A stretch of 64,000 nt of DNA, from positions 654,720,001 through 654,784,000 of the forward strand of contig NC_067398.1 of assembly GCF_016432865.1 (NCBI RefSeq), read 5' to 3'. The notes under the pieces were generated by a model, which was not told the DNA's origin, did no database searches, and saw nothing but the letters and a program-made list of their open reading frames with translations. Position 1 is the first letter of the stretch. Every line of letters begins with the position of its first letter. Of the stretch, positions 39,801 through 42,800 are shown one piece after another. Source of the stretch: Antechinus flavipes (lineage: Eukaryota). Made by a program: the position numbers and the translations under genes.

Positions 39801-42800
39801 CTATGATTTCCCTTTTCCTCCCCAACTCTTAGAATCCCTTGTCTCTCTTCGGGTCTCAGCTCTCTATGAATTTTTTCGGGAGGCCTTTCTCAATTTCCCC
39901 GGGTATTCCTTCATCCCTAAATCACATTTCTTTTGCATTTATCTTCTCTCCTTATATCTGTGTGTATCGCCACAACATAATCTAAGCTCCTTCAGAGAGA
40001 ATCTGTTTTACTTTTATACGTACTGCACTGGTGCAACAGTGAATACTTAAATACTGGTTGGTTGACTGATTGATGTATATAAGTCTATCTAGATTTCTGC
40101 AAGCTTTTAGCAATCTCTCTCATGAAAATCCTTTAGGACACGATGTAGGCTAGATAAAGAGGTTTCTGAAATTATTGAATGACGGGGCTCAAAAAGTGAT
40201 GACTGATGCACTGAGGTCCATCTAGAGAGAGATCTATAGTGGAGGGCCCCAGGGACCTGGCCTGGGCTTTGGATTCTTAAATATTTTTATCAAAGACTGG
40301 GCTCTTGAAAGCATAGATGGCATACTTATCAACGTTCAGGCAACAATGCTGAAATCAGTCAAAACCATTTATATACTACGGGACAGAAAGTCTATAGTTA
40401 CTTTTCATGCCTCAAAACCAACCCCTCCTGGGACCTTTGCACTTATGTGGCTCAACCTTCCAAGAGACTCAAGACATAAAACCTGACTCATATTGATATT
40501 TCAGCCTTTATCCATCTTCATTTCTTCTCAGTTGACAAAATCCTACAATCCCTCTTCCTTCTACTTTCTTGTATTGTTTTCATTCCTGAGCTCTTTCCCT
40601 CTTTGGGACCACTTAGGACCCTTCACTGACTTGTCCCTAAAGTTTCTCCCCAGTGGAGCCTATCTTTCAGAATATTGTAAGAGGAAACTATTCTGTACGT
40701 GTGATCCTGCTATTCAACTGGCCTTTCACTAGCCATCAAGAAAAAGCATCATCTCTTAGGATGAAATTCAAGAACTTTACAACCTAGCTCTGAATAGCCT
40801 CTTCCAGCCTTGACTCATGATCAGTGAGTGAGTCAATAAATAGTTATTAAGTCCCTACTGTATGCCAGGCATTATTTTAATATTTCCAATATTCTAGAAT
40901 CCTAAAACATCTTGGCTAGAATGATGAGCCAAAGCCCAAAAGATCTGACGTCAGTCACTTGTATGATTCTGGACAAGTAATTTTCCATCTCTGGGAAGCC
41001 TCTTCATCTGAAAAATGAGGGAATTGTGCTGGATGACCTCTGAGATATCTTCCTTCTCTGAATATATGCTCCTAAGAGGAAATTTAGTAGGAACAAAGGA
41101 CTTAAGTCCTACTCTTGGTACACACAAGTCACAATTACAGAGGACAGGTATGACTGTATGTGGATCTTTGCATTTGAATGTAGTATAAATCTCACTATTA
41201 GTTAAAGTCTAACATAATGGAGATAAAAAAATCTCATGTGCTGTAGTAGAGACAGTGGAGACCAGAGGCTAGAATATTGATGATGGAGTCAGGAAGACTT
41301 GGGTCTGTCACTCTCTAGCAGTGTGAGCCTGGGCTCATATAACTTCCATGAGTCTGTTTTTTCATCTGTAAAATGGGGATAATAATAGCACCTGTCTCCG
41401 GGGGACTAGTGGTGAGAGTCAAATGAGATAATGTGTATCAAATGCCCTAGAAACGGGAGTTGTTATCATTCCATTGTCCAGAGTACTACTAGGTTCTGTC
41501 TCAGATCGGGACAGGCTGTATCTGGAGAGCTATCTCCAGTCCTGGGTACCACAAAAGAGGAAGAGACTAACAGACTGGAACATGTCCAAGGAAGGTGACC
41601 AAGAGGATGGTTCACTTAGGACATGTGAATGTCCTGTTCTTTACATTAATTGAAAGAACTGTGCATAGTTAATATGGAGAAGAGAAGGGGGTGAGGGAAT
41701 AGAACTGTTTTTCAAGTATTTGAAGGATATGGAAAAAGAAATAGATTCAGTCTACTTAATCCCCAGGAAAAGGACTAGGAACTCTGGGTAGAGGGTGCAG
41801 AAAGACACTTAAGTGTGTGGAAAGAATTTCCTAATAATTAGAACAGTCCTGGAGTGAAGATTTTCGGGTAGATGAGTAACAGGTCAGGGAAATGCCTATT
41901 TGGACACAGGTTTTATTAAATGATCTCTGAGATTCCCTTCTAACTGTGATTTCTGTGACTCTGTGGTGAGGGAGATAATTTGAGGCTTCTATCCACCCCC
42001 CTCCCCCACTGCCCTATGCCCATTGGCACATGTATAGGGGAAGAGAGACCGGAGACAAAGAATCCCCCCTCCCCCCCAAGTGCCTGAGGTACCAGATCAG
42101 TGACTCTGATCAATACCTCAATCGATGCCCTGCAAAGTGCAGCTCATCGACCAGTTCTGCCCTGAGCAGGAGACAGGGGGGGGGCCTTTGCTGTGGCACG
42201 TGGCCTGAGTGTCTGGAGCTGGGGACTCAGACCCCCTTCACTCCGATGCCCCCTGAGCCTGGGACCATCCCTCGGAGTCGCTTCCTTCTCCAGCCCTCCT
42301 ACCCCTGCCCTGCCCCCTTTGCTGGGGGCCTGCTCGGCAGGCTGGCGCGGTGGGCCTGCAGGAGTCAGGGCCAGGTGGGGGGAGGGTCCAGAGTTAGGTG
42401 GGCGGATGCCTTGGGCCAGCCCAGACCTCAGTTTCCCCTGGACCTAATCTCTGCTCTGGGGGGCTCTGAGGGGCTCCCCGCTCCCACGGGTTCTTCCCCC
42501 TCCCCCCCTCGGGCCGAGTGAGGCGGGGTGGGCCGTGCTGACCTGTGACCTGATCTACGAGGATTCGGGAGGTGATGATGCGCCCGTACTGGGAGAAGAG
42601 CTGCTCCATTTCCTTCTGGCTCATGGTCTTGGGGAGGCCACTCACATACAGGTTGGCATCTCTGATGGAGGCTGAGCTGGGCCGGGCGTAGGACACCTGG
42701 GGGCATTAGGGACCCATGCGGGATCCAGGGCCAGCGGGAGTGAGGGGTAACCCCTGGCTTAGCGGTCGCTTGCCCACCCCCCGCCCCTCCCTTCCCGTTC

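Follow-up and report, generated by a model that had tools for sequence, protein, structure and literature searches.

The window, the whole 64,000-nucleotide stretch of DNA analysed here, is dasyurid marsupial DNA, and its ELAVL3 intron 4 is 100% identical to that of locus L005 (GCA_016432865.2). ELAVL3, which encodes HuC, lies on the minus strand with ZNF653-like zinc fingers upstream. In a word search, the best match of the stop-free frame ending in the last exon was opossum ELAVL3, and window exons 2, 3, 5, 6, and 7 all match the 367-residue marsupial protein P0129 (exon 4 was left out of this comparison). Exon borders were taken from translations together with splice signals, giving the following map:

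49810 (ATG) to 49802 (end), minus strand: ELAVL3 exon 1
about 44855–44636, minus strand: ELAVL3 exon 2
about 44024–43921, minus strand: ELAVL3 exon 3
42697–43920, minus strand: ELAVL3 intron 3
42696–42543, minus strand: ELAVL3 exon 4, 154 nt, ending in phase 1
35786–42542, minus strand: ELAVL3 intron 4
35785–35560, minus strand: ELAVL3 exon 5, the proposed downstream splice partner of the candidate described below
about 34857–34817, minus strand: ELAVL3 exon 6
34192 (start) to 33842 (end of last codon), minus strand: ELAVL3 exon 7

In marsupial ELAVL3, intron 4 measures 6.8–8.0 kb and intron 3 1.2–1.4 kb. The corresponding values in eutherian ELAVL3 (four muroid rodents, two cetaceans, and a sloth) are 88–211 nt for intron 4 and 3.1–12.4 kb for intron 3, and the sizes of the two introns are thus swapped between marsupials and the sampled eutherians. 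Intron 4 is 2661 nt long in a lizard and 110 nt in a frog. Two further features of the gene were seen in passing. Intron 5 holds a GC-rich minisatellite at 35174–35444 with a period of 37 (19+18), about seven copies, and an 83% match. In annotated isoforms of frog and fish (P0110, P0062, P0091, P0098, P0106, and many more from fish), small in-frame insertions fall exactly at the exon 4/5 junction, in the RRM2 loop; for instance, Xenopus laevis has DSTTC, carp KPG, and teleosts A or VGA. Some primate and mole gene models (P0099, P0100, P0025) contain long insertions that resemble read-through of an intron.

An exon-like unit in intron 4

HuC dosage matters for neurons, and its loss in humans, via a cryptic exon different from the one considered here, has been linked to ALS. 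The first-pass annotation proposed that intron 4 holds a 45-nt poison exon, that is, a switch coupling alternative splicing to nonsense-mediated decay (AS-NMD). The layout it described is indeed present on the minus strand, where a pyrimidine tract and CAG are followed by 45 nt and then GTATTG. The unit begins 381 nt past the end of exon 4 (42543 to 42161), as had been stated, and the 45-mer is unique within the window. Read in the phase-1 frame in which exon 4 ends, it gives 14 codons and then TGA as its final full codon. At least two junctions were said to lie downstream of this stop, which agrees with our map, since exons 5, 6, and 7 follow; the TGA lies more than 50–55 nt upstream of the last exon junction, the position rule for NMD. 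The elements of the unit are:

42162–42184, minus strand: acceptor-like signal, with a 21-nt pyrimidine tract at 42184–42164 and AG at 42163–42162
42117–42161, minus strand: candidate cassette, 45 nt, with TGA at 42120–42118
42111–42116, minus strand: donor-like GTATTG
42064–42077, minus strand: G-run downstream of the donor-like site

Splice sites were scored with a crude, hand-entered position-weight matrix. On this scale the candidate acceptor reaches 7.6 bits, a value attained by 6 of the 506 AGs in intron 4, and outscores the four real ELAVL3 acceptors that could be scored. The donor reaches −0.7 bits versus 3.2–7.3 for real exons, with U1 pairing at only five positions, and 48 of the 333 GTs in intron 4 do as well. 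Eleven AG..GT pairs from five acceptors in the intron equal or beat the candidate on both scores, equal or better exon-like pairs being found at four acceptors other than its own, and an in-frame stop occurs in about half of random 45-mers. The exon-like layout of the candidate is not beyond chance; the conserved sequence of the 45-nt block, described below, is. A more general caution is that several AG..GT pairs resembling exons with stops turn up within a few kilobases of intron.

One of the equal or better pairs lies at 36338–36285 on the minus strand, where a T16 tract and AG are followed by 54 nt lacking an in-frame stop and then by GTAGGA. Its AG and GT are kept in seven of seven lineages, and it lies in or beside the most conserved island of intron 4 (36303–36193, 0.198 parsimony steps per site). 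By the standard that the first-pass annotation applied to the 45-nt block, this unit is no worse a candidate.

If the block were an exon, it would be a marsupial-specific alternative cassette whose inclusion between exons 4 and 5 brings a premature stop and leads to NMD of the ELAVL3 mRNA, with the weak donor and a surrounding hairpin holding inclusion low and open to regulation. We consider this reading unlikely. The strong acceptor speaks for it, as does the TGA, which is separated from the last exon by more than two junctions, and so do the G-runs downstream. The donor score and the sparse U1 pairing speak against it, and so does the surrounding sequence, where U-rich or AU-rich sites for ELAVL binding are lacking for about 100 nt around the candidate (no run of five or more U in 42260–42020; GC content of the region 0.62). 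No UG repeat, the TDP-43-type repressor site, was seen near the candidate.

Evidence from proteins and RNA was sought as well. The candidate peptide occurs in none of the 179 proteins examined, which again argues against an exon. A word search with residues 82–122 of the unspliced 122-residue frame of L006 found no match among proteins of 67–213 residues, a size range below that of a full-length isoform extended by 15 residues. Eight RNA-like sequencing runs (X1–X8; two studies, one organism) contain 0.19–0.23 of the sampled words of 41900–42720, seven of them falling at 0.22–0.23. Exon 4 alone is expected to contribute about 0.16, an unspliced or genomic copy from a related dasyurid a further 0.067–0.083, and the spliced 45 nt less than 0.01. 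The observed share fits exon 4 plus such a copy, and the runs are therefore uninformative on inclusion of the candidate. No ELAVL3 poison exon in intron 4 was reported in the literature that our searches returned.

The acceptor could also be used without any donor, namely if exon 4 were joined to 42161 and the transcript, after the TGA, were cleaved downstream of AATAAA at 41917–41912, yielding a truncated HuC from an alternative terminal exon like STMN2 exon 2a. The AATAAA and a downstream TGTGT lie about 245 nt past the acceptor. However, among marsupials the AATAAA is confined to the window species, with AATATA in the other dasyurids and no such signal in the rest, which makes this arrangement very improbable. 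A recursive splice site was considered and ruled out, because the AG is followed by GGCAGA and not by GT.

Constraint among marsupials

Eight marsupial loci encoding P0129 were compared and that of Dromiciops (L018) was added, for nine in all. Intron 4 identity to the window is 92.8% in L007 and L008, 88.6% in L006, about 76% in L001, L003, and L004, and 71.7% in L002. Substitution rates were obtained by Fitch parsimony from a seven-lineage alignment of the whole intron, which has a mean of 0.687 steps per site. Ancient repeat-like sequence in the intron still aligns, and the intron mean is therefore a fair neutral yardstick. One stretch at about 40850–40880, which resembles the core of an ancient MIR-type repeat and is aligned across all marsupials, can serve as a rough neutral yardstick.

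The 45-nt block is well preserved across the nine marsupial loci. It has accumulated 0.267 steps per site, versus 0.60 for the 45 nt upstream. The tightest constraint is found in the 24 nt directly after the donor, at about 0.08 steps per site, and a second peak lies in the middle of the candidate. The body of the block is less constrained than this flank, which counts against the cassette reading. The block and its surroundings form a longer island with the following elements:

42086–42196, minus strand: island conserved in marsupials by parsimony rate, holding everything from the acceptor-like signal to the inverted repeats
42122–42150, minus strand: inverted repeat 1, inside the candidate, with 6-bp and 5-bp stems and a CTT loop
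42086–42119, minus strand: inverted repeat 2, overlapping the donor, with inner stem GATCAG/CTGATC and loop AGTCA at 42111–42095

Read in the sense direction (42196–42086), the island is the best 111-nt window, at 0.297 steps per site, a rate about 2.3 times below that of the remaining intron and one that fits a lineage-restricted conserved non-coding element. It ranks third among roughly 20 comparable islands of the intron. The island is really constrained, but moderately and not uniquely. Other islands conserved among marsupials were seen at 39054–39286 and 35975–36085, with 0.29–0.31 steps per site.

These figures bear on the possibility that the island has no function and is a slowly mutating or chance-conserved patch of alignable intron carrying chance splice-like signals. 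Such an account would be in keeping with an intron that aligns throughout, even to opossum at about 75% identity, with the roughly 20 windows that reach similar scores, with the ancient repeat sequence that can still be aligned, and with the recurrence of the exon-like layout by chance. Against it stand the 33 steps seen over 111 sites versus about 76 expected, which is far from the intron mean, and the coincidence of the most invariant cores with a pair of neighboring inverted repeats that together are more stable than nearly all shuffled sequences (see below). We hold it to be unlikely, a shade more so than the cassette exon.

Conservation of the splice dinucleotides in relatives had been set beforehand as a test, and here the result favors an exon: AG is kept in eight of the nine marsupial loci and GT in all nine. 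Indeed, the whole GTATTG hexamer is invariant in the nine loci, a second CAG lying 5 nt downstream of the acceptor CAG is invariant too, and changes within the pyrimidine tract keep a pyrimidine in marsupials except for two G substitutions. The island also covers the tract, the block, and its downstream flank. The broader expectation that the splice sites and the stop would both be conserved did not hold. In L002 the acceptor AG is lost (CGG). The donor, already poor, is weakened further in three loci by changes at its exon positions −1 to −3, which have become TAA in L003, GAA in L004, and GTG in L018. The stop is replaced by TTA in L003 and by TGT in L018, so that inclusion would add 15 in-frame residues in these two, and L001 has an extra TAG. 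The G-run after the donor is long only in dasyurids; elsewhere it does not exceed four or five G, and L001 has three.

Nor was the block recovered in other mammals or sauropsids, where the first-pass annotation had proposed to look for conserved splice sites and a stop. A sensitive blastn search with marsupial intron 4 gave no match over the island in seven eutherian, one lizard, and one frog ELAVL3 loci. Judged from these loci, the element is confined to marsupials, which weighs against a cassette exon, since the poison exons known from RNA-binding proteins are usually ancient. A broader scenario would accommodate this distribution by having marsupials gain their own NMD-coupled HuC cassette exon within the lineage-specific 7-kb intron 4, independently of placentals, with its poor donor lodged in conserved hairpins and made accessible in particular neurons by an RNA-binding protein or helicase. 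We regard it as improbable, more so than a cassette exon as such. If true, a marsupial-only poison exon would show that switches of this kind arise repeatedly. Overall, what can be read from the sequence leans against a working AS-NMD switch. Conservation alone, it should be kept in mind, cannot separate an exon from a neighboring regulatory element.

Inverted repeats and the nature of the island

The two most invariant cores of the island coincide with the two adjacent inverted repeats, and the constraint follows these repeats, not the exon borders. A 98-nt segment has a predicted fold of −39.2 kcal/mol (z = −3.6), matched by 1 of 200 shuffles, and, of 333 windows across intron 4, the 100-nt one starting at the donor region has the strongest predicted structure (z = −4.8). 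The antisense strand folds equally well (z = −3.9), so that action as RNA and action as DNA are inseparable on this evidence. The helices were recovered by RNAalifold, with 98.7% of cells paired in inverted repeat 1. In this repeat and in the inner stem of repeat 2, all one-sided changes but one keep pairing through G-U on the sense strand. Such retention hints at action on the RNA level, a pattern that we noticed post hoc and that transition bias could explain.

Based on these observations, we favor, with a probability of roughly 0.55, an interpretation in which the 45-nt block is part of a conserved, marsupial-only cis-element of about 110 nt that is non-exonic. The element would be under moderate purifying selection in marsupials, absent elsewhere, and built around the two short inverted repeats, and it may act as RNA or as DNA. 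The likeness to a cassette exon, with a good pyrimidine tract and AG, a poor GTATTG donor, and a stop, would be largely incidental, and the block would presumably not be spliced in as a regular autoregulatory poison exon. As for how the element might work, we slightly favor hairpins forming locally in the sense pre-mRNA of this long intron peculiar to marsupials, a tentative suggestion to which we give well under even odds. The next choice, somewhat more doubtful, is an intronic enhancer with palindromic transcription-factor sites.

Several observations run counter to the cis-element interpretation. The span of the island, from near the pyrimidine tract to about 30 nt past the donor, is also what would be expected of an alternative exon conserved together with its flanks; almost all marsupials retain the AG and the GT; and most loci have G-runs after the donor. 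Compensatory changes are lacking as well, with both sides changed in 0 of 23 pairs and covariation equal to that of shuffles, a comparison of low power given its 7–8 lineages. The first-pass annotation had offered a DNA element with ONECUT/CUX-like motifs as an alternative to the exon. The ATCGAT and TATTGATC on which it drew are present, but statistical support from ATTGAT motifs (ONECUT/PBX-type) did not materialize: 10 were seen versus 6.4 expected, a number reached in 28 of 300 simulations, 3 of the 10 are invariant, and neither enrichment nor conservation is significant after multiple testing.

Other candidate identities were dropped. The best Rfam matches score at most 18 bits versus thresholds of 40–90, and none lies on 42086–42161; a miRNA, snoRNA, or other Rfam family is thus without a match, and the hairpins are too short for a pre-miRNA. 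A REST site was discarded as a poor match by eye.

Comparison with known systems helps to place the island. Autoregulatory poison cassette exons acting through AS-NMD have reportedly been found in RNA-binding proteins such as SR proteins and hnRNPs. Known poison exons show high to ultra-high conservation among mammals or vertebrates, have usable splice sites and binding sites for their own protein, and are seen in RNA. The candidate resembles them in being an intronic AG..GT unit in the gene of an RNA-binding protein, in placing an in-frame stop far ahead of the last junction, and in having flanks that are conserved to some extent. It differs from them in its moderate, marsupial-only conservation, its poor donor, and a stop that is not universal, and it is known from sequence alone.

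A second comparison is with stem-loops known to hide a 5' splice site, such as those of MAPT exon 10 and SMN2 (TSL2). As in these cases, the predicted fold in the window species pairs the donor, GAG|GUA, with UACCUC 26 nt downstream. However, the conserved part of inverted repeat 2 is its inner stem, whereas the outer stem, which would bury GAG|GTA, is broken by 6–7 substitutions across marsupials. Conserved masking of the donor by the outer stem is not supported by these alignments.

Lineage-restricted conserved non-coding elements in the introns of neuronal genes are similar to the island in size (about 100 nt), in evolving 2–3 times more slowly than their surroundings, and in being one of a cluster. 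The palindromic build of the island is not known to be typical of any named class.

Human ELAVL3 has a cryptic exon of its own, exon 4a, a frameshifting 166-nt exon that is unmasked by loss of TDP-43 and lies in intron 3 adjoining a TDP-43 site (PMC11139733). Like it, the candidate is intronic, belongs to the same gene, and would bring a premature stop and lower HuC. Unlike it, the candidate measures 45 nt, lies in intron 4, has no UG repeat, and has no match in the seven eutherian ELAVL3 loci (human not among them). Position, length, and the lack of a eutherian match rule out the candidate as a counterpart of exon 4a.

As a useful by-product, the analysis maps conserved islands specific to marsupials across an intron that placentals have reduced to about 100–200 nt. 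A second conserved block was seen 60 nt downstream of the island, at about 41995–42047 on the minus strand, where a C/U-rich arm and a G-rich arm are predicted to pair around a TGCC..GGCA palindrome; it holds one two-sided change, CG-to-UA, in L001.
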